Shown: one piece after another, positions 3,661-43,992 of the stretch | Position numbering within the stretch: position 1 is the first letter of the stretch | How the letters are laid out: each line of letters begins with the position of its first letter | NCBI RefSeq assembly: GCF_001194135.2 | Contig: NC_068994.1 | Span: forward strand, 3,720,332-3,784,331 | DNA: 64,000 nucleotides | Source of the DNA: Octopus bimaculoides | Taxonomy: Eukaryota | Direction of reading: 5' to 3' | Notes under the pieces: generated by a model | What the model was told of the DNA's origin: nothing | Database searches by the model: none | Seen by the model: only the letters and a program-made list of their open reading frames with translations | Made by a program: the position numbers and the translations under genes

Positions 3661-3690
3661 ACATACAAACACACTCACATACATATACAG

Positions 3691-3738
<48 letters not shown>

Positions 3739-4514
3739 GATGAAATGGGTAAATTGTTGTCATTTAAAATGTTTAATGACGAAAAAAAGATGGCTGGGTA
3801 GACAGGTTTGTGAGAGTGTGAAGTGGGGAGTGACAGATGGATAGAGATAGGAATGTAGGGAACAGTGGGTAAGGGTGGAGATGTGGGCGATGGGTGGGGT
3901 GTAAAGTACAATAGGTGTTGGTCGGGGGGGGGGGAGGAGGTGATGGATGGTAATACATAAAAAGAGAAGAGGTGGAGAACAACAGTATAATAGAATTGTT
4001 GAGAGAGATGAGAAAGAGGGAGACGATGTGAAGTACAGAGCAGAGAGAAGATGAACAGTAACAGAGATGGAGGATGGTGGTGGTCGTGACAACCATCAGT
4101 TATTATACAGGGTGACACCACCACCACCAGCACCATTGCCGCTGCCACCAACTCCACTTCTACCCCTAGCATCAGTTATTGACAACTGTTACCAAGTCAC
4201 TCGTCAATGCCAATCTATAAAGCTGTATAAGACAGCTGCCATCATTCAATGTCTGCTTTTTGCTGTGACTGGTGTTGTGTCAATGACCATTTGGAAATAG
4301 AAAAAGAAATATGCAGAAACAAAGACAAAAAAACTGGGAGCTGACACAAATATGTCTGATTTAATATGTCTTATGAAAGAGTGGGACAATAATCATTAAG
4401 TAATTAGACAATTAGTAAATGAAGAGTAGTTTTATGATAAACTTTGTCAATCATTTTTTGCTTTTGAAAATAAAATATACTCTGTAACATCATAGTCATG
4501 GCTGATACTGGTGT

Positions 4515-10337: not shown

Positions 10338-10540
10338 TTGACCCTTTAGCATTCAAATTATCCTGCTGAATGTAATGTTTGTTTATTCGTTATTTTGAAT
10401 TAATTATGCATTATCTTGTAGCTTTGAGATTTTGGTCATGTGATTAGAATTGGTGTGAGGGGCCAAATTTGGCAAATTTGAACATAATACAAGTAGAATA
10501 ATTGGGCTGGATATGGTCAGTTTGAAAGCTATAAGGTTAA
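10338..10540. mobile_element. TTAA-ended MITE family F
   Basis: ttgaccctttagcatt...aaagctataaggttaa; internal sequence is the reverse complement of 27339-27558. Confidence 0.7.
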
Positions 10541-11532
10541 ACTCAGAATGTAGAGGGAGCTAGGACAGGCATATTCTCCTCACCATACCACTTCTAAACT
10601 TCACATTCCACCCATTATATACACCACCACTGAGTTGATTCTACACTTTTGACCAATTATACACCCTACCACTGGTTCTACACCCCACAACCCCTCTCCC
10701 CACCACTCCGCTGTCTTCTAATAAAAGCAAAGAAGATAAAAAATAAATTATGTGTAAAAAAATTTGGAGAATTGGTACGAATATATCAAAAAAATTGCCA
10801 TGATAGGTGTCTGATGCACTCAGAGATGATGATGTTCATGTTGTTGATGTTGTTTTGGCCAGTCAAATTAAGTTGTTGCATAGTTTCCTTAAAAGAAATG
10901 GGTTTTTTTTTTGCTTTGTTTTGTTGGGTTATTTTTATATAAGCCAAGAAAAGAAGAAATTTTGCAGTTTCCAGTGTTTCATTGATAGATGATGTAAGAG
11001 GGATCAGGGAATCCAGGGTATACACAGCTGTTCTGAGATTTCCATGTAAACAGTGAGAATTTCTAGACCCATCCAACCCATGCTGTAAAGTGTTTGGTAA
11101 GGAATATATAAAAAAAAAAAAGCTTACAGCTGTGTTTTTTTTGTTGTTTGTTTTAGTGTTAAAAGTTGCAGTGGGAAGATTTCAAAAACCACATGGATAC
11201 ATGTGAACAGGTGGCTTTGTATGTGGCAGTGTACATGTGGATATACATGTGTATATAGGGTTGGCACATACACAGATATTTGTATATATATATATCTGTA
11301 CATATATATTCATATATGTGTGTGATGTATATACAAAATATCTGAGATGTTTATGCAAAAGCTCATGGGTGTATATAAATATGTGTGTGTATATGTGAAT
11401 GTCTACATATAGACAGACTCTCATACTACTACACAACCACAAAGGCCACATACATTGTTTTCCCAGGTGGAATATCCAAGGCCAGAGCTATGGTCCCACT
11501 CTCTCTCTTTCTCTCTTGTCTGCCACTTCAGT

Positions 11533-13899
11533 TTACAGCTGCCATAAATAGTTGTTCATAGGTGACAGTTCCTCCATGTTGTTCTTGGACGGATTCATGG
11601 AATTCTTCAGATGGATGCGCTTGTGGCGCTGCAGTGTGTCGCGCCGGGCAAAGTGTTTGGCACAGATGTCACACTGGTAGGCTTTCTCGCCGGTGTGTGT
11701 GCGCTTGTGCAGCTGAAGGTACTGGCGCTGGGCAAACTGTTTGAAGCAGATGTCACAGTGGAATGGTTTCTCGCCAGTGTGCGACCGAGTGTGCATCTGC
11801 AGAGAATTCTTACGAGAGAACTGCTTGAAGCAGATGTCACACTGGAATGGTTTCTCTCCAGTGTGGGATCGCTGGTGCAACTGTAAGTAATGGCGTTGTG
11901 CAAACTGCTTGAAGCAGATGTCACACTGGTACCGGCGCTTTGGGTTGTGTGTGCGTCGGTGAACTGTCAGCTTATCACGTTGTGCAAACTGTTTGAGACA
12001 CACGTCACATTGGTAGGGCCGTTCTCCTGTGTGGGTTCTGCGATGTATTTGAAGAGTGGTTTTACGGGCAAATTTCTGAATGCAAAAGTCACACTGGAAA
12101 GGCTTCTCTCCAGTGTGGGTCCTCTTGTGGATCTGGAGATAATGTTTCTGGGTGAACTTCTTGTAGCAGACATCGCAGTGCAACAACTTTTCGCCAGTGT
12201 GAATCCGTCGATGGATTTGCAGGTAATAGCGTTGAGCGAACTGCTTGAAACAGTAGTCGCACTGGTAACGTTTTTTGTACACAAACATCCCTGTGTTTTC
12301 ATTGCTTAGGTTCATATTGTTGTGATCTTTATTCATGTTATACTGAGCCATGTTGTTGTTGTTGCTGTTGTTGTTGTTGTGGGTGCTGGTGTTGCTGGTG
12401 TTGCTGCTGTTGTTGCTGCTGTTGCTGTTGCTGGCCTTGAGGACATGCTTTGCTCTGCGATGCATCTTCAGCTGTGAACGGTGATAAAATGCTTCCCCGC
12501 ACAGCTCGCAGTGGTGCGGTCGTTCCCCTGTGTGTTGGGTGCGACGGTGGATCAAGAGGGTGTCGCGTCGGGCAAACTTCTGAATGCAGAAGTCACACTG
12601 GTAAGGCTTCTCTCCAGTGTGGGACCTCTTGTGGATGCGTAAGTAGTGGCGTTGAGCAAACGGCTTGAAACAGATGTCACATTGATACATCTTTGAGGAT
12701 CTGTCGCCATGGGGGTTAGGCATCTGTGGCACCAGGCCAGAATGTGCCGGCATTGCCTCGCCTTTGATTCGGGACCTCATTTTATCTTCAGCACTGCCGC
12801 TGTTTTCATGTGAAAACGGCATGATAACAACCGTGCCTGGCTCTGACATTTGTTGGTTGTTGTAAGTCTGGACATTACTCATGCTATTGTTTCTCCTGGC
12901 AACGTTTGTCACCATTGGGGTGGGCTGAGTCTGTTTCGGGTGGTATTGTTCCCTCATGCATCCGTCCATGTTGCCTCTACTGTCGTTTATGTCAGGGGAG
13001 GTCACAACATTATTCTGCTGGGGTCGCTCGTGATTACGCTTGTGCCTCTGAAGTGTATCCCTACGTCCGAACTGTTTGCCGCAGATGTCACAACCAAACG
13101 GACGTTCCCCCGTGTGGGTGCGTCGGTGGTTGTGCATCAAATATTCCTGCGTGAAATGTTTCCCACAAAAATCACAGAACAACTGCTTCTCCCTTGCTCG
13201 CTCTTGTCGTTGAAACGACTGGTTCGATGCAGCATAGGAAGGCTGTACAGTTGCGGGAGACTTTGATGCCTGGATGAATTTTTTCTGGCCAGAATCTCCG
13301 CAGCTGTTGGAAGTAGAAGTGGACGACACAGTGGCTTGAGAGTAGGAGCTTTTCACATTATCTCCGCCACTGCTATCATTGGCCATACTGCTGTTGTTGT
13401 TGGTGTTGCTGTTCACAACATTGTCGCTACTACAACAACTACAGTTACTGCAACTGCAGTCGTTTCCCGATGTCATCGAGGACACCATCGTGTTCTTTTG
13501 TAATGGTGCAACTGCTATGGACACCGGTGCAGTATCCTTCTGGTGGTAACCACTATCGGCGCTGAGGTTGCTGCCCTGGTTGCAGTTACCCGAGCCCTCA
13601 CTGCCGCTGGTCCCACCGAAACAACTTCCAGGAGCCGTCATAAGCTGCATTCTTTCGGGCGTTAAAGGAAAGTAGCAGTTTTGTGTGAATGGGTTTCCAT
13701 AAACGTCGGTAGGGAAGACATTCTGGCTGATGTGTTGTATTCTCTGGGCATCCAAAGTGTGGTGGCCCATCGAAATCTGCTTGCCCCCTGGGAGGCTGCT
13801 ACTGTGGCTGATCCTTTGTGTCTGTGAACTGCCGCTTCTCTGAGCAAACTGCTTGCTATACATGTCCCCGTATATCGACATTCCACTGCCCCTTTCCAT
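11533..13899 (-). CDS. C2H2 zinc-finger protein ZF-A, 788 aa, 13 fingers in clusters of 2+3+8, poly-Asn/Ser linkers
   Basis: Uninterrupted ORF; 13 C-x2-C-x12-H-x3/4-H motifs mostly joined by TGEKP/TGERP; strong start context GCCAACATGG; acceptor-like site 14 nt upstream of the ATG. Confidence 0.97.
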   Translation of the reverse strand: MERGSGMSIYGDMYSKQFAQRSGSSQTQRISHSSSLPGGKQISMGHHTLDAQRIQHISQNVFPTDVYGNPFTQNCYFPLTPERMQLMTAPGSCFGGTSGSEGSGNCNQGSNLSADSGYHQKDTAPVSIAVAPLQKNTMVSSMTSGNDCSCSNCSCCSSDNVVNSNTNNNSSMANDSSGGDNVKSSYSQATVSSTSTSNSCGDSGQKKFIQASKSPATVQPSYAASNQSFQRQERAREKQLFCDFCGKHFTQEYLMHNHRRTHTGERPFGCDICGKQFGRRDTLQRHKRNHERPQQNNVVTSPDINDSRGNMDGCMREQYHPKQTQPTPMVTNVARRNNSMSNVQTYNNQQMSEPGTVVIMPFSHENSGSAEDKMRSRIKGEAMPAHSGLVPQMPNPHGDRSSKMYQCDICFKPFAQRHYLRIHKRSHTGEKPYQCDFCIQKFARRDTLLIHRRTQHTGERPHHCELCGEAFYHRSQLKMHRRAKHVLKASNSNSSNNSSNTSNTSTHNNNNSNNNNMAQYNMNKDHNNMNLSNENTGMFVYKKRYQCDYCFKQFAQRYYLQIHRRIHTGEKLLHCDVCYKKFTQKHYLQIHKRTHTGEKPFQCDFCIQKFARKTTLQIHRRTHTGERPYQCDVCLKQFAQRDKLTVHRRTHNPKRRYQCDICFKQFAQRHYLQLHQRSHTGEKPFQCDICFKQFSRKNSLQMHTRSHTGEKPFHCDICFKQFAQRQYLQLHKRTHTGEKAYQCDICAKHFARRDTLQRHKRIHLKNSMNPSKNNMEELSPMNNYLWQL

Positions 13900-13913
13900 G
13901 TTGGCGTTGTTGT

Positions 13914-13927
13914 CTAGCAGAGAATAA
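13914..13927 (-). promoter_or_regulatory. Predicted splice acceptor of the ZF-A coding exon
   Basis: Minus strand TTATTCTCTGCTAG|ACAACAACGCCAACATGG; exon would start at 13913. Confidence 0.65.
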
Positions 13928-14384
13928 TGGTGGGGTTACAGAGGGCTATTATTGGTGGCTGGTAGTAGTAACAAGTCTTCTCTGTGTCTGTGTGTTTGCT
14001 TCGTCCCCACAAGGGTAGAGGAGTGGGTTGGTTCACTTGGTTCGGTTATAGGCAACCTGGAAGAGAAGAAGACATTGTCATTGGTCAATTGCGATGGTGG
14101 TGGGGAGGGGAAACACTTAGGGACAAAATATAGGGAGACATCTATAGGCAAACTATATTGGGGATTCAGAAACAATGCTACTGATAAAATTGCTGTATAA
14201 ACAAGGATCTGATTACTGTGTCTGTACAATGAAATGAATGGTTTCTATACATATAACGATGATTAGCATGCATCTATCCACCTACTGTGTAATTGTTTAC
14301 CTTCAGCAATTTTATGCGTTCCCTATCATCCGATGTGGTTAGTCAGAACCTCGATTACATTAGTGTACTAGTTTTTAGATTATA

Positions 14385-14630
14385 CATCATCATTGTCGTC
14401 GTTTAACGTCCGCTTTCCATGCTAGCATGGGTTGGACGGTTTGAATGAGGACTGGCAAACCAGAAAGCTGCACCAGGCTCCAATCTGATCTGGCAGAGTT
14501 TCTACAGCTGGATGCCCTTCCTAACGCCAACCACTCAGAGAGTGTAGTGGGTGCTTCTATGTGCCACCGGCATGAGGGCCAGTCAGGCAGTACTGACAAC
14601 GGCCACGCTCAAAAAGGTGTTTTTCTTGTC
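14385..14630 (-). mobile_element. Repeat family C, well-preserved copy
   Basis: tttaacgtccgctttccatgctagcatgggttggacgg...gatgcccttcctaacgccaaccactc...gtgccaccggca. Confidence 0.85.
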
Positions 14631-15289
14631 ATCCTCTTTGTGAGACGATCCAGTATCCTGAAGCTAGTTCCCACTATTTCTGCCTATGTCATCCTTGGTC
14701 TTCCTCTTCTGATACTTCTGTTATGATTCCTATGCAATACATGTCTGTAACAACACAGTCTCAGCTCATCTGGATCACACTACTCACACATATTAACATT
14801 ACACATCCAACAGAACATGCTTGCTTCATTTCTCTCCAGCTTCTGCACATCCTCTGCATGCATTGCCCATGTCTCTCTACCAAGGGCAGACTGAGCCATT
14901 GGTCAGTTGGGTAGTGCCCAAGGGCATGAAGCTGCACTCTACTAAAACACACATTCAAAGGGGCCTGGTAAACAGTTATGCCCGAGGGCCCTTAATACTC
15001 TCAGTCCACCCCTGCTCACTACCACACATCATCCACCACACCTTGTATATGAACAACATATTTTCTACCCTTTGCCTTAAGAAACAAACCCTTTGTTGTC
15101 CATAGACGTAATAGCTCCCTAGAATTTTTCCTACCCTAGAGTTGTTCTGGCCATCATGCTTTCACAACACCCTCCTCAAAGCACCATGAGCCCAACACCA
15201 TATAGTTGGGAAGCAACCTTTTGAACTACACACCTCTGAAATCACTAATCAATACTATACACACACACACATATATATATATAGTTGAA

Positions 15290-22802: not shown

Positions 22803-23070
22803 TTGTCAGCTGTCCCACAGACATGCCACCTCCTTTCTCTTCTTTATAGCCACTATAATAGTCTTCTCTTGAACCCTTACCACACTGGTAGCCCCACCTG
22901 TCCTTCAGTGGCTTATCACTCTCGGCATGTCAAACTCCTTTGGTCTCGCACTAACCACTACACCCGGTCTTTCCTCTTCTGGTTCTTTGGAATCTTCTCT
23001 TTTGGGCAGTTGATGTCCAATTGCTCAATCAAAACATTAACAACATCAATATCTCACCAGAACCAACAAT
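22803..23070 (+). mobile_element. CR1/L2-group LINE ORF2 C-terminal remnant
   Basis: Peptide LSLLYSHYN...SRTNHYTRSF resembles the post-RT C-terminal motif of these LINEs. Confidence 0.55.
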
Positions 23071-23119
23071 CCTTCTTCCAGACTCCAGACTCAGCAAGTA
23101 AAAAACAGCCTCACTTACT

Positions 23120-23393
23120 CTGTGATTTGTTACAGTTGTGCATTGTGTCCTTGAGCAAGACACTTCATCTCATGCTGCTCCATTCCACTCAGCAGGCAAA
23201 AGTGCATTGTACTTGTAATTCAAAGGGTCAGTCATGTCACATCCTGTGTTATGCTGGATCTCCCCAAGAACTACGTTAAGGGTACACGTGTCTGTGGAGT
23301 GCTCAGCCACTTGCTCATTAATTTCACAAGCAGGCTGTTCTGTTGATCGGATCAACTGGAACATTTGTCGTTGTAATCGACAGAGAGCCAGTT
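23120..23393 (+). mobile_element. tRNA-derived SINE family D (head truncated)
   Basis: gtgtccttgagcaagacactt...agaactacgttaagggtacacgtgtctgtgga matches 49245-49560. Confidence 0.8.
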
Positions 23394-25140: not shown

Positions 25141-26210
25141 TATAATAAATAACATGTGGTGGTGTGCCACACTCCCCATGCAGTGGTGTCCCGCACTCCT
25201 ACAACAACAACAACAACAACACATACAATGTTTTATGTTTTTATTCTTTTATATATTTTACACAAAGGCTCATTATATTTTTTCCCCTTTTTTTTAGTTA
25301 TTAATTAATTAATTAATTAATTGTTTTCCTTCTGTTTGTTAAATGATTAAAAAAAGTCAAAATACTTGAAATTACAATNNNNNNNNNNTTTTTTTAGTTA
25401 TTAATTAATTAATTAATTAATTGTTTTCCTTCTGTTTGTTAAATGATTAAAAAAAGTCAAAATACTTGAAATTACAATTCACAGTTTCAGAGAGGAGGAA
25501 GAGGCAGGGTGGGAAAGAGCGAGGGGGGAGGAAAAAAAAAACAAAACAAAATAAAACAAAAAAAATAACATTAAAAAAAGCTAAAAAATTAAAAATATGA
25601 GAGTTTGTTAAAGGTGGGATGTGGTGGCGTTCATCTGTTTTACAATGGGTGGAAAGAAGAGAGAATTAACAATGGATGTAAAACTAAAAAAAAAAACTGA
25701 AAAAAAGTAACAAAAAACATACAGAATAAACAAAAGAAGCTGTCTCCCCACCCCAGCCCCTTGCCACCAACAAGTTGATCAAAACTCCTGAAAGATTTGT
25801 AGGGATATCATGAACCTACACCTTAACCCAGTGCACCATGGGGTAAGGAGCCGGAAGAGGAGGGGAAAGGGGGGACCAGCATGAATTATAATTAATGGTA
25901 TTAAAAAAAAAATTAAAATAGCAATAACAATAATAATAATAATAATAATAATGTTTGTTTTGTTGTTGTTTTATAGGTAGGTTATGAGGGGTGGGGTGGG
26001 GAGAATGTGTGGTAGTGGTGGTGGCTTGTAACAAGAGAACCATGGTAAGGAAGATATTTTTTAAAAAAACAGATAAAAAGAAATGACAGTACAGAAATGA
26101 CACGATTATTATTATTATTATTGTTATTCTTCTTTTTATTATTATTATTATTATTATAGTGAGGAGAGTCTGAACAAAGATATGTGAATTATGATGAAAC
26201 AGACAGTGTG

Positions 26211-26425
26211 TGATGGGAGGAGGAGCATTTGTAATGGAGGAGGAGCATTTGTAAATGGGAGGAGGGGCATGTATGATGGGAGGAGGAGCATGTATGATGG
26301 GAGGAAGGCCATGTATGGGAGGAGGGGCATGTGATGAGAGGAGGGGAATGTGATGGTAGGAGGGACGTGAGATAGAAGGAGGAAGATGTGTAATGGAAGG
26401 GGCGCGTGATGGGAGGGGCATATGT
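26211..26425. repeat. Degenerate purine-rich minisatellite (~20-22-bp unit, (t)gatgggaggagg(a/g)gcat)
   Basis: About 10 diverged units directly visible. Confidence 0.75.
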
Positions 26426-27996: not shown

Positions 27997-29117
27997 GTGA
28001 TCTAAATTAAAACCTTCCTTCCAAATTTTGTGTTAATCAATGTTCTAATTGCTAGTTTAATAATGACAAAATTATTTTACTAAATCCGTCATCATTTTCA
28101 AATTCAATTGAGAGAAAGGTGGAGGCAGTGTGTTTTCAACAGAGCAAGGTAAACAAAACATTTAGGAAGAACAATCCACATGACTCCCACTCCTGATGTT
28201 TCCTGTCTGTATGAACATCTATTGTAGAGATACTTCAGTCAGATGTGTTTGTAGTTAGGGAGTTGCCATGTCCTAATTGTCAGGCATGTTAATTCAAATT
28301 TTAGAATTTAGATCATGAAGTCGTAGAAGAGGGTGGTAGGGGATTTGTTGAGGTAAAGTATTTGGCTGTTGTATTTAGCAAATCAAATATCTACTTAGAA
28401 GCTTCTTCAATGATTGATTAAAATAACGAGATGGGGTAGGGGAGACGGATGATTAGGGTGGCAAGATGATGATGACTGAGCTAAGGATAACGATAGGATG
28501 CTGATGGTGGGGGTGGGGATGATAACGATGATGGCAATAACCACAACAACAACAATGGCAAAGATATTGTGATGGTGGTGGCGGTGGGGGTGGGGATGAC
28601 TTGGCCATTAAAGGAGGTAGTGGCAGTGATGATATGTGGATGATGATGATGATGATGACAATAAAGAGAACTGACTGACCTCACCGAGTGCAGCTGGGTC
28701 AGCCTAGCAACTGCTCCCCCACCCTACATCGAACCCTTAGATCCTTCCTCCTTACAACCTACAACTAACTGGTTGTTACCATGTAGTGACCACCACATAA
28801 GACACATAACAGGGAGGTCACACTGGACTTCAGTGAAGAGGGTGAGGTGGGATAAGAGTGGAAAAAGGAAAGAGGGACACCTGCAGCAACCCCAGGTGTT
28901 AGTAATGAGCAGGATGAAGGGGTCCATGAATAATGATGACGATGATGATGATAGCGATGATGATAGTAGTGGTGGTGGTGGTGATGGGTATAACAATGGT
29001 GACAAACATGACAACAACAACAACAACAACAAAGGCTATACAAAGATGAAGAGAGGGAGAGAGAAAGAGTAACAAGGGATTAATAAAGTGACCGAGGGGA
29101 CAACGGCCCTTATCCTG

Positions 29118-31389
29118 CTATTTCGTGGAGTTTGGGTCAATGGCGTGGCTCTTTGATGACGTGCTCATGTCTTGAATGCTGGGCCAAGAGTTCTGTTTGT
29201 GCTTCATGCTGCCTGGGAACGTGTTGGGCATGTTGGGCCATCCGCTGCCGGACATATGGGTGACGGGGAATCCTCTGGCCCACAGGTAGTTGTTCTCCCA
29301 GCTCTGTGGCATCTCGTGCAGGTATGCAGATGTCATCCAGGAAGTGGTCACTGCCGGCGTCTGCAACCTGACGGCGCTCGGGTGGNNNNNNNNNNNNNNN
29401 NNNNNNNNNNNNNNNNNNNNNNNNNNNNNNNNNNNNNNNNNNNNNNNNNNNNNNNNNNNNNNNNNNNNNNNNNNNNNNNNNNNNNNNNNNNNNNNNNNNN
29501 NNNNNNNNNNNNNNNNNNNNGGTGCCGTTCATTGCAACACCGTCCGGACTGAGCAGGTTCGGGTCCATCCCATTGTTCTTTAGGCCGGGGGGCGTCTTTT
29601 GGGAATCCGATGTAGACAGATGCAGCGGGTCCTGTTTACTGTTGCCATGGCAACTGCTCCTGTTGTTGTTGTTGTTGTTGTTCGTAGCAGCACCACTGTC
29701 CGAGGGGGTACCAGCAGTGGAGCCGTCGTTACCATTGAACGACGACGGCGTAGAAGACGGTGGCGTTTTGATGTGGCCGGAATCCTTGATCCTTGCAGCT
29801 GCGGCCGCTGCTGCCGCCGCCGCCGCTGCTGCTGCCGAGGCCTGGGCAGACATGCCGGGAACTAAGGTCAACGGGGTCACTGAATTCGAAGAGGATGTCT
29901 GTGAGGACAGAGACATAGAAGTTGGTGGGTTTTTCGTGAAGAGTTCACATCCAGTGCGAGTGCGTTTATGGTTATTCAGGTTGGCCCTTTGTGAGAAGCT
30001 TTTCCCACACACGTCACACTGGTACGGTTTCTCGCCAGTGTGGACCCTAAGATGAGTTTTCAGGTTGCCACGTTGTGCAAACGTCTTGTTGCACACGGTG
30101 CAATAGTAAGGTTTCTCGCCCGTGTGCACTCGTTCGTGGTTGCGGAGACCGATTTCCAAGCTGAACGCTTTCGAACACATCGAACACTTGAAGAGGTCGC
30201 CAGTGTGTGTCCGCCTGTGGTTGTTTAAATTGGTTCTTTGAGAGAAACACTTGCCACAGAGGTCGCAAGAATATGGTTTGACACCTGTGTGTGTTCGCAT
30301 GTGGATGTTAAGGTTGCCCAGCTGACTGAACGCCTTCACGCACACGGAACAACTGTACGGTTTGTCACCCGTGTGAATCCGTTCATGGTTTTTGAGAGCA
30401 GTCTGCTGTGAAAAGTCCCGTCCACAAAACGAACACTTGTAAGGTTTCTCTCCAGTATGAATGCGTTCGTGACTCCTCAGGTTAATCTGCAGGCTAAACG
30501 CTTTCCCACAAAACGCGCACTTGAACATGTCCCCAGTGTGTATACGCCTATGGTTATCCAAGTTCGTCCTCTGGGAGAACCGTTTCCCACAAGTTTCGCA
30601 CTCGTAAGGTTTTTCCCCGGTGTGTGTTCTGAGATGAATGTTGAGGTTTGCATGCTGGGTAAAAGCTTTCTCACATATCGTGCATTTAAATGGCCTTTCC
30701 CCCGAGTGAGTCCTTAAGTGTGTGCTCAAATTACCAAGTTGAGTGAAGCTTTTTTTACAAATAGTACAACTGAAAGGCTTTTCGCCTGAGTGAGTTCTTT
30801 CATGGTTCCGCAGGGCTGCTTTCTGAGCGAAAGCTCTGCCACATGTTGCACAGCAGAACGGTTTTTCAGCCGTGTGCGTCAGTTCGTGTGTTTTCAAATT
30901 GATCTGCTGTGTGAAGCCCTTCTTGCAGAACGTACAATAGTACTGTTTGTTGTTGTTGTTGTTGTTGTTGTTGCTACTGTTGTTGCTGTTGTTGTTGTTG
31001 TTGCCAGTGCCGCCACCACAAGTTCCTCCTCCACCTCCGCCACCAGCACCACCACCACCGCCAGCACCACCGTCATTGTTGCCGTTGCCGCTACCCATGT
31101 TTCCAGTATTGCCTCCAGGTGGGGCCACCAGTGGCCTCATTGACTGTGTCATGTGACTACTACTGTCGTGCATGTGGTCTGGGCTGCTCAGGCCAGGGGA
31201 GAAATCCTTACGGTACGAGTCTGGCATCTGGGAGTGTTGCTTGCCAACGGAACCGAAAGACTTCTCAGACAGAAGAAGGCCCTTCTCGTGGCATTTTGAG
31301 AAATGTTCATTAGGGTAGAAGCTCGTGGGCTGGCTGTAAATGTTGGGCTGATGGTTGCCCATGGCGTACATAAACTGTGCGGGATACAT
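29118..31389 (-). CDS. C2H2 zinc-finger protein ZF-B, 11 intact fingers plus 1 degenerate, poly-Gly/Asn/Ala tracts; C-terminus crosses an N gap (29386-29520)
   Basis: The first in-frame ATG is at 31389 (CACCATG); the track start at 31431 is a TTG just downstream of an in-frame TGA. Tandem fingers with TGEKP-type linkers. After the gap, the frame ending in TAG at 29118 is preferred over the track's frame ending at 29137 (see findings). Confidence 0.93.
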
Positions 31390-35971: not shown

Positions 35972-36563
35972 GATGATGATCGTTGTGGTGGCGGTGATAT
36001 AACCCTGAAGCCACTATCATTGATTTCCTCTCATATATACACATCAATTATTGTAGTCAAGGCATTGATTTTTCTGCCGTGATTCAAACACCTGCACACA
36101 CACACACACGTGTACAGAAACAAGATGCAACGGTGCACACATACATACACACTTATACACGCAGTAATATATATATTTATATATATATATTATGACGTAC
36201 GGAGGCACACACACCTATACTTATACACAGAGACAGACATGTATACATAGAACCAGGCACACAGACACATAAATATAAATAAGCATACACGTACACACGT
36301 AATAACAGACACATTCTGACACAGAGAGGCATACGTCTATTTATACAGCCATACACATATACACATGCGTAAAGATACATAGACACACACATATTCTATA
36401 CTGATCTATATGTACTTGTAGATAAGAATGTCTGTTTGTGTTTGCCACGACAGATTATGGTTACATACAAATTTATTAATGAACGATACATATCGTGTAC
36501 ACAAACCACATATACACACATATATATGTTCATACATACATACACACATATATATGTTCATAC

Positions 36564-36623
<60 letters not shown>

Positions 36624-37313
36624 CTATGTATGTATGAACATATATATATGTGTGTATATGTGGTTTGTGTATATACACACATCTCTCTCTCTCTCTCTTA
36701 TATATATATATAGATAGATAGATGTGTATGTATGTAAGTTTATCATATAAATATATATTTATATGATAAACTTTTAATATCTCCATCTCTCGTTTTGTAT
36801 GTATTGATAATAGATAGATAGATAGATAGATAGATAGATTGATTGATAGATAGATAGACAGACAGACAGAGCTAGACAGTGTTTCGTAATTTGGCAGTGA
36901 AGCAATAATCTTGCTCTCTCTCTCCATGCAGCTGGTAATGGACGACGCCCTGTCTATCTGTGAGAGGAATTTCATGAGGTGATGGACTGTTGGACACACA
37001 GCAGCTATGCCATGGAGGCGGTTTGTAGACTTGGATCGTGTGTCTGGATCCACTGATTAAGTGGGGTGGACTTAGGGGGATAGTCGATGGGAGTGGTGGA
37101 GTGTGTGGGTCTGAGATAGGCAACTGGAATAGGACCAGGACGTAATACTCTATACACACGCATACACAGACACACAAGCAAGCACACATGCATACATATA
37201 TATATATATATATATGCACAGTCACACACAATAACATGTATGCACACTCACACAGATAATTGTATGTATGTATGTATATGTACATGCACATACATACCGC
37301 ATTATACATCGCT

Positions 37314-42946: not shown

Positions 42947-43687
42947 TATATATATATACACACATATCAGTGTGTGAGTGTATATACACACATACATAGA
43001 TCTGATCTATGTATATGTGTTACTGTTGATATCAAATGTTTCCATTGACTCTTTGCTGAGAAATACGGTGATGTTGTTTATATTCAACAGTACAACAGCT
43101 TCATACATTCTGACATGCAAGGATCAGGGGTTCGAAAATAATGGAGTTGGCATAACAGGTAAAGGAAAGGCAAAAGGAGGAGCTTCTGACAGGAGGAGAA
43201 ATTGGTCTCTCGAAGATGTTCAAAGCATGTCAACGTGGGTTACATGGAAAAAGCATGATGATAGCATGAATATGCACACACACACACACATACACATATG
43301 AACATTTATGTCTGTGTCTGTGTATATATATGTGTGTGTGTGCGTGTGTGGCTGGTGGGTGGGAAGGTATGTATACAGAAGTATATATTTGAACAATCTA
43401 ACCAAGGGCAAAACTTTAAGTAGCCGTCAGCCTTTCGATATAAAGATATATATGTGTATATACACATGTACACACATTCATGTACATATATTTATGTGTA
43501 TATGTATACATGTATGTGTATATAAATATATATATGTATATACATATGAATATGTATAAATATATATATATATATATAGTTATATATATCAATATGTATA
43601 CATATATATTATACATGCATACACAGACACACACATATACACGTGAATATATACATATATGTACTTCTACAAAAGCAATATGCATGT

Positions 43688-43745
<58 letters not shown>

Positions 43746-43992
43746 ACACATATATATATATATATATATATACACATGCAAATATACACATGTAGATACA
43801 CAAATACACATACATATGAACGTTATATACACACACACACACATATATATGTAGACACGATTTTCATATACACAAACACGCACAAATATATATAACTAGA
43901 TTACATGAATACATATATATATATCTATATAATTACATAAATATATATACACTTAAATATTTATATATATATATATATATATATTTATATAC

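Follow-up and report, generated by a model that had tools for sequence, protein, structure and literature searches.

Our analysis of a 64,000 nucleotide (nt) stretch of the Octopus bimaculoides genome (assembly GCF_001194135.2, contig NC_068994.1, positions 3,720,332 to 3,784,331 of the forward strand; the whole stretch is called the window below) suggests that its two C2H2 zinc finger genes, ZF-A and ZF-B, each encode a conserved C-terminal element. The reading that we consider probable is that positions 29118-29384 of the window (minus strand) are the genuine 3' end of a single-exon ZF-B gene, that nothing but an assembly gap, whose length was wrongly estimated, breaks this exon, that ZF-A carries a separate element at its end, and that the two elements may be docking sites. 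The elements, a tryptophan (Trp)-rich tail of ~85 amino acids (aa) in ZF-B and a 10-residue end-motif in ZF-A, are conserved and apparently undescribed. They appear to be restricted to cephalopods, and neither is younger than the split between octopus and cuttlefish. The expansion of C2H2 zinc finger genes in cephalopods is well known and has been linked to the nervous system (PMC12513265), and no C- or N-terminal motif of these genes is mentioned in that paper or in PMC10547256, which between them cover the cephalopod and metazoan C2H2 expansions. Literature searches on the peptide strings and on accessory motifs of cephalopod C2H2 proteins returned nothing relevant, and the literature searched contains no account of how these proteins act once DNA-bound and no accessory domain or motif.

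Beyond the gap two frames remain open on the minus strand, one ending at TGA 29137-29139 (the 29137 frame) and the other at TAG 29118-29120. The second contains the pentapeptide NNYLW, which also occurs near the end of ZF-A, and is called the NNYLW frame below. Both frames, their sequences and the two copies of NNYLW were found where the initial annotation had placed them, and its proposal that the NNYLW frame encodes the true ZF-B C-terminus is borne out by homology, codon-position pattern, GC content at third codon positions (GC3) and the position of the stop. A protein search with ZF-B found the cephalopod proteins P0024, P0018, P0078, P0066 and, more distantly, P0043, all of which have the same tail at their end, as does P0223, found later. 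In a search with a profile of five homologue tails, from which ZF-B was left out, the NNYLW frame scores 108 bits (E=2e-32), and there is no other match among the six-frame fragments of the window. BLOSUM local scores against the homologues are 86-249 for the NNYLW frame and 24-46 for the 29137 frame. Identity at the three codon positions of the ZF-B tail is 0.66/0.85/0.40 to P0024 and 0.62/0.82/0.39 to P0018, with 27 and 26 codons, respectively, that differ synonymously. The GC3 of the NNYLW frame is 0.78, the GC content of the window being 38%, and ZF-B stops after ...TK, most family members likewise stopping after a terminal K. The 29137 frame is without a homologue, and in three paralogues the corresponding segment contains 1-7 stops in this frame. 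We rejected an overlapping gene in this frame, since it is open in ZF-B only, and we attribute its openness there to the high GC3 of the true frame.

Because homology, codon-position pattern, GC3 and stop position agree, we regard the frame ending at TAG 29118 as the real C-terminus of ZF-B, a matter which these comparisons settle as far as is possible with the gap unclosed. In P0024 (2424 nt) and P0078 (2064 nt) the fingers and the tail are encoded in one uninterrupted genomic open reading frame (ORF), and the gap, which hides the finger-tail junction of ZF-B itself, therefore probably lies inside a single ZF-B exon, in a variable linker. The part of ZF-B before the gap has the N-terminus of the family, and the junction that follows its fingers is also found in P0078 and, in nearly the same form, in P0223.

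As far as the alignments can show, the conserved unit in ZF-B is the C-terminal region of ~85 aa and not an isolated NNYLW pentapeptide, so that NNYLW, taken for a short linear motif in the initial annotation, is better seen as the core of a larger conserved region. The consensus of the tail opens with RLQ..(S/T)..YL(H/Q) and closes with S.WPN.P...C..KQ.KQ..W...Q.MHT...K. The tail is indeed rich in Trp, as had been noted, with five such residues among 88 (5.7%), and it is rich in Pro as well. In an alignment of 13 sequences W29 (of SWE), W35 (of YLW) and R37 are invariant, while R.Q, L, M, E, Y, F, P, P, W, N and K are near-invariant; within the most conserved block (Table 1) the near-invariant positions are Y21, L22, Y33, F39 and P40. 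The core block can be written W-x-x-x-[YF]-x-W-x-R-x-[FY]-[PA], and NNYLW lies inside it. Across the family the L of this pentapeptide is L, V, N, G or S, and its NN is NN, SN, NS, SH, NH or SP. ZF-B has all of the invariant columns and thus belongs to the subfamily that this tail defines.

A HMMER scan of 1.84 billion representative proteins with the tail gave 14 matches at E<=1e-3, ~10 of them genuine and four of them repeat artefacts. P0228 (581 aa) is a tandem repeat with a unit of ~53 aa, each unit carrying W[VM]N[NH][YC]MWA[RK]; the tail profile matches it through the core only, and it is probably translated repetitive DNA. All named members with the tail are from coleoid cephalopods (O. 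bimaculoides, O. vulgaris, O. sinensis, Argonauta hians and Acanthosepion pharaonis), and the subfamily comprises about 10 clusters at 50% identity. Its full-length members have 5 to 14 C2H2 fingers, as matched by a regular expression (regex), and carry the NCBI labels ZFP2, 'zinc finger protein 2 homolog', ZNF665-like and ZNF79. No Pfam model matches the ZF-B tail, and a PDB sequence search with it gave 0 matches. On ZF-A, ZF-B, P0024, P0078, P0123 and P0136, Pfam identified C2H2-type models only, with no KRAB, SCAN, BTB or ZAD. The family also has an N-terminal block in common, MYPxQPMYxxGNQxNF...K(C)xEK, the ZF-B copy of which is encoded at 31290-31389 (minus strand). Conserved segments outside the fingers thus characterise the ZF-B-type subfamily at the N-terminus as well as at the C-terminus.

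ZF-A stands outside this subfamily, as its C-terminus is unmatched by the tail profile at E<10. In case NNYLWQL led into a splice donor, we looked for a downstream ZF-A exon encoding RGFP...WPN, by regex and by profile in the six frames of the window, and found none. ZF-A is 100% identical to protein P0121 on CM046614.1 (O. bimaculoides, GCA_001194135.2), and P0121 and the ZF-A orthologues end at the same place as ZF-A.

The last residues of ZF-A are EELSPMNNYLWQL, and its end-motif reads ELSPMNNYLW, followed by QL and the stop. With Φ for a hydrophobic residue, the ZF-A-type pattern is [DE]-Φ-[PQS]-[PQS]-Φ-x-x-Y-Φ-W-x(1-3)-COOH, and it occurs in three subfamilies, from octopus to cuttlefish. 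Related peptides end all of the ZF-A orthologues and its nearest cephalopod paralogues. Immediately before their stops P0122 has ...EEDMQPMSPYMWQL, the cuttlefish protein P0123 ...EEDIPPMTPYMWSL, P0124 ...EEQLPSVDPYTWQL, P0132 ...HEFPSVTSYLWQL, P0133 (Argonauta) and P0136 (O. vulgaris) both ...HEFPSVTNYLWHTI, and P0185 ...IELQPLNKYMWLQ. Only Y and W are invariant. In the ZF-A orthologues NN is replaced by SP, TP or DP, and L by M or T. Cephalopod homologues thus preserve NNYLW only in part: Y and W are kept at ZF-A-type ends, but NN and L vary in both families. Against a profile of seven other end-motif proteins, with ZF-A left out, ZF-A scores 21.1 bits (independent E-value, iE, 3e-6). Built from the ZF-A orthologue group alone, a profile recovers the two remaining subfamilies with 8-10.5 bits (iE 0.01-0.06), always at the extreme C-terminus, and these matches rank above all of about 200 non-cephalopod zinc finger proteins. 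The strict pattern has 0 matches in 221,077 residues of non-cephalopod zinc finger proteins. It is also absent from ZF-B, where there are two extra residues and 53 more residues follow the motif. On these comparisons we regard the ZF-A end-motif as genuine and, like the ZF-B tail, at least as old as the octopus-cuttlefish split.

Two observations concern similar proteins. The Acanthosepion proteins bear the label 'KRAB'. One of them is the cuttlefish ZF-A orthologue P0123, whose N-terminus is spliced and unrelated; Pfam identifies no KRAB in it, and at its locus in Acanthosepion pharaonis (L008, CAHIKZ030005241.1) an unspliced ORF from 18270 starts with MERLTGMPVYGDMYGKQF, as ZF-A does. Both the name and the gene model appear to be mistaken. 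The mammalian ZFP28 homologues P0057, P0095, P0100-P0103 and P0195 end in ...DLFP[KR][FY][LVIF]WNPSSL[PS][SP][SP], with P0057 differing more. This tail resembles the cephalopod end-motif in having an acidic residue, then Φ-F-P, then aromatic-Φ-W, a resemblance that may be due to chance.

Whether the elements of ZF-A and ZF-B are one motif is less clear. The codons for NNYLW are AAC AAC TAT TTA TGG in ZF-A and AAC AAC TAC CTG TGG in ZF-B, so that the synonymous difference reported earlier (TAT TTA versus TAC CTG) is present, and there is no third copy in the six frames of the window. The initial annotation took NNYLW as a possibly undescribed motif shared by the members of a zinc finger cluster. 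What stands of this is that the segment is conserved at the protein level in both families and is absent from Pfam, the PDB and the searched papers; what does not stand is NNYLW itself as the conserved unit, for N, N and L are identical between ZF-A and ZF-B yet conserved in neither family, and the conserved core that they share is Y-x-W. That the two elements form a single motif, whether through common origin or common function, seems to us only slightly more likely than not. The competing explanation, nearly as well placed, is coincidence or convergence, in which two independent C-terminal elements overlap only in the aromatic Y-x-W core and no single cluster-wide motif exists.

Several results speak against a common motif and for coincidence or convergence, beginning with the variable NN and L. 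Hidden Markov models (HMMs) of the ZF-A-type motif give ZF-B-type tails only 0.5-4.4 bits, with iE 0.85-15 (3.7-4.4 bits for ZF-B itself). The contexts differ, the motif being at the extreme C-terminus in ZF-A and internal in ZF-B, where the conserved R-G-F-P...WPN...KQ block follows. The two groups have unrelated N-terminal regions (hhalign P=0.21), and we rejected an N-terminal motif common to both groups on the same value. Their finger arrays are not each other's close matches. On the other side, a 5-mer is shared between the post-gap frames and the 25-aa tail of ZF-A in just 0.33% of 200,000 shuffles, the figure being 8.6% when the whole ZF-A protein is used. The program hhalign aligns MEELSP--MNNYLWQ of ZF-A to a segment of the ZF-B tail (P=0.004) and also matches up the acidic-Φ-P stretch upstream, although the probability that it gives is just 8%. 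Once the ZF-A-type proteins themselves and a repeat artefact are set aside, ZF-B-type tails come next among the matches of the ZF-A-type profiles, above nearly all of the about 200 non-cephalopod zinc finger proteins. In addition, ZF-A and ZF-B lie next to each other on the same strand, and in three species members of the family are found on a common chromosome. Motif profiles do not link the two families significantly, and of the comparisons made only the hhalign link (P=0.004) is suggestive, but unproven. We think it rather unlikely that a single coleoid-specific docking peptide (acidic-Φ-P...Y-Φ-W), older than the octopus-cuttlefish split, recruits one dedicated cofactor for a clade of C2H2 factors.

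With respect to function, both elements are aromatic-centred peptides that are conserved at the protein level over the coleoid radiation and lie in the low-structure tails of finger arrays. AlphaFold2 predicts no secondary structure for the ZF-B tail, from an alignment of few sequences (predicted local distance difference test score, pLDDT, 54.5; predicted template modelling score, pTM, 0.11). For residues 66-79 of the ZF-A tail pLDDT is <50, with a low-confidence short helix or turn over NYLWQ only. We rejected a folded domain in the ZF-B tail given the low confidence and lack of secondary structure, together with the 0 matches in the PDB and in Pfam. We propose that both elements are candidate peptide docking sites in the disordered tails of DNA-bound finger proteins, and that they might recruit a nuclear partner, for example a co-activator or co-repressor. 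The invariant Y and W would be the contacts, joined in the ZF-B type by the second W and by R-G-F-P. Acidic residues precede the hydrophobic cluster, most strongly in the ZNF45-like group (EEDAEEGDKAEKPIHEFPSVTNYLWHTI), and lean towards a cofactor-binding or activation-type peptide. Two points count against this proposal: the docking function is entirely inferred, and 'disordered' is weak evidence because the AlphaFold2 alignments are shallow (7 and 5 sequences).

The motifs may instead be real and have another role, which we consider unlikely: they could act in nuclear export as CRM1-type signals, in protein turnover as degrons, or by folding back onto the fingers. The spacings read from the alignments, Φ-x-x-Φ-x-x-Y-x-W in ZF-A and M-x-x-x-W-x-x-x-Y-x-W in ZF-B, resemble export signals of class 1b/1c as these are defined in the literature, and the short helix predicted over NYLWQ would suit such a role. 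However, Y and W would have to fill two of the four hydrophobic positions of the signal, and these residues are unusual in export signals; nor does AlphaFold2 predict, at its low confidence, any packing of the tail on the fingers.

Two further points count against our reading of the ZF-B gene. An N run of exactly 135 (0 mod 3) would put the 29137 frame in phase with the fingers, and no ZF-B protein model and no transcript-derived or exact ORF was found in the protein collection. Because of this, and because the gap is unclosed, it is homology and parsimony that support the finger-tail join. The NNYLW frame is in phase only if the true gap length is 2 mod 3. There are thirteen N runs in the window and, because their lengths vary widely (10 to 601), we take these to be size estimates and not measured lengths. 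That the tail is not translated with ZF-B, be it that the 29137 frame is used, that the gene is a recently frameshifted pseudogene or that two paralogues were scaffolded across the gap, is very improbable in our view: the phase of the N run and the missing gene model or ORF favour it, as does the mixed affinity of the gene, whose tail lies somewhat nearer P0024 and P0018 while its post-finger junction agrees with P0078 and P0223, but the 29137 frame has the low homologue scores and the paralogue stops given above, the run lengths are estimates, the two halves of ZF-B are intact ORFs that belong to one subfamily, the tail retains every invariant residue and the family stop position, and its first part is identical to P0078, the tail therefore being intermediate and not chimeric.

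A search for ZF-B orthologues and for gap-closing sequence with the non-finger C-terminus and the tail found only P0223, and as it also missed known relatives its silence does not mean absence. No O. vulgaris/sinensis protein closer than 67% to ZF-A was found; orthologues of ZF-B and ZF-A in these species may be unannotated or absent.

The coordinates of the features are collected in Table 1. Both genes are on the minus strand, 15 kb apart. In the part before the gap ZF-B encodes, in order, the N-terminus MYPAQFMY..., low-complexity Gly/Asn runs, the C2H2 fingers and a Ser/Ala/Asn-rich linker; base 29385, next to the gap, is the last base of a codon that starts within it. The P0121 locus (3,730,864-3,735,230 of CM046614.1) aligns at 100% to window positions 10533-14899, and a record coordinate is therefore the window position plus 3,720,331, which places the gap at about 3,749,717-3,749,851.

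Table 1. Positions in the window of the ZF-A and ZF-B features discussed in the text
Feature	Position	Strand	Description
ZF-A coding sequence (CDS)	11533..13899	minus	788 aa, single exon, 13 regex-matched C2H2 fingers, TAA 11533-11535
ZF-A extreme C-terminal motif	11536..11574	minus	EELSPMNNYLWQL; NNYLW 11542-11556
ZF-B 3' CDS end	29118..29384	minus	88 codons + TAG 29118-29120; encodes the Trp-rich C-terminal region
Most conserved block of ZF-B tail	29265..29324	minus	from alignments; contains NNYLW 29280-29294
Alternative post-gap frame	29137..29385	minus	82 codons, TGA 29137-29139
Assembly gap, 135 N	29386..29520		probably inside the ZF-B exon, variable linker between fingers and conserved tail
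ZF-B pre-gap CDS	29521..31389	minus	ATG 31387-31389, 11 C2H2 fingers

The two genes had been thought to belong to a zinc finger cluster. In our analysis they are the only C2H2 genes in the window, and their relatives are spread across megabases of the same chromosome with no tight cluster. P0024 is on the same chromosome as ZF-B at a distance of 340 kb. There is no second family member within ±10 kb of P0078, P0136, P0122 and P0123, or within ±3 kb of P0024. The P0078 locus (L004, O. vulgaris/sinensis) and the window have only dispersed repeats in common, so that orthology of P0078 and ZF-B is not established. Several stretches of the window match the dispersed repeats around P0078 in O. sinensis. 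The window contains nine further ORFs of 155 aa or longer, none of which has a Pfam match; such ORFs lie at 3675-4172, 22803-23279, 25816-26421, 36406-37053, 43416-43883, 53384-53899, 56825-57322 and 57531-58180. Directly downstream of the ZF-B stop, positions 28920-29035 contain low-complexity runs of GAT, GGT and AAC triplets, which gave a spurious zinc finger regex match at 29031.

ZF-B is missing from the protein set because of the gap, which probably falls inside its exon; its reading frame and stop can now be annotated. The two conserved elements provide concrete handles for finding the partners of cephalopod C2H2 factors. If they were indeed one shared docking peptide, cephalopods would have in it an equivalent of KRAB-TRIM28 or WRPW-Groucho.

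The closest known proteins are the cephalopod ZFP2-like members P0024 and P0255 (O. bimaculoides), P0078, P0240 and P0231 (O. vulgaris/sinensis), P0241 and P0230 (Argonauta hians) and P0253, P0226 and P0227 (Acanthosepion pharaonis). They have in common with ZF-B the MYP... block, the C2H2 array and the ~85-aa tail, which is 33-59% identical to that of ZF-B. Finger number and linkers differ, whereas the stop is shared with the closest members. The names ZFP2, ZNF665 and ZNF79 are automatic best-hit labels and are no indication of orthology to the vertebrate genes. The ZF-B-type family is small and distinct from the large octopus C2H2 expansion. It is comparable to the KRAB and SCAN families of vertebrates, the ZAD family of insects and the FiNZ family of cyprinid fish in combining a conserved non-finger region with a C2H2 array in one lineage, and in those families a region of this kind recruits effectors. 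The KRAB, SCAN, ZAD and FiNZ modules are N-terminal, whereas the ZF-B region is C-terminal and predicted to be disordered, and there is no sequence similarity. Neither cephalopod element is a member of these module families or of the WRPW type discussed next.

Two further comparisons are with short peptides. WRPW/WRPY is the C-terminal motif of Hairy/Hes and Runx that binds Groucho/TLE. The elements described here are like it in being short Trp/Tyr peptides at or near the C-terminus of a DNA-binding factor, in a variable tail, and differ from it in having no R-P between the aromatic residues (Y-[LMT]-W-x-Φ) and, in the ZF-B type, in being internal; W-R-P-[WY] at the C-terminus occurs in none of the end-motif sequences. 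The activation motif of the p53 TAD1 type is F-x-x-Φ-W-x-Φ-Φ. Its spacing differs from that of the cephalopod elements, and the ZF-A tail has a net charge close to zero, but the elements resemble it in having acidic residues before an M/L/Y/W cluster in a disordered tail, a likeness that is most marked in the ZNF45-like members.

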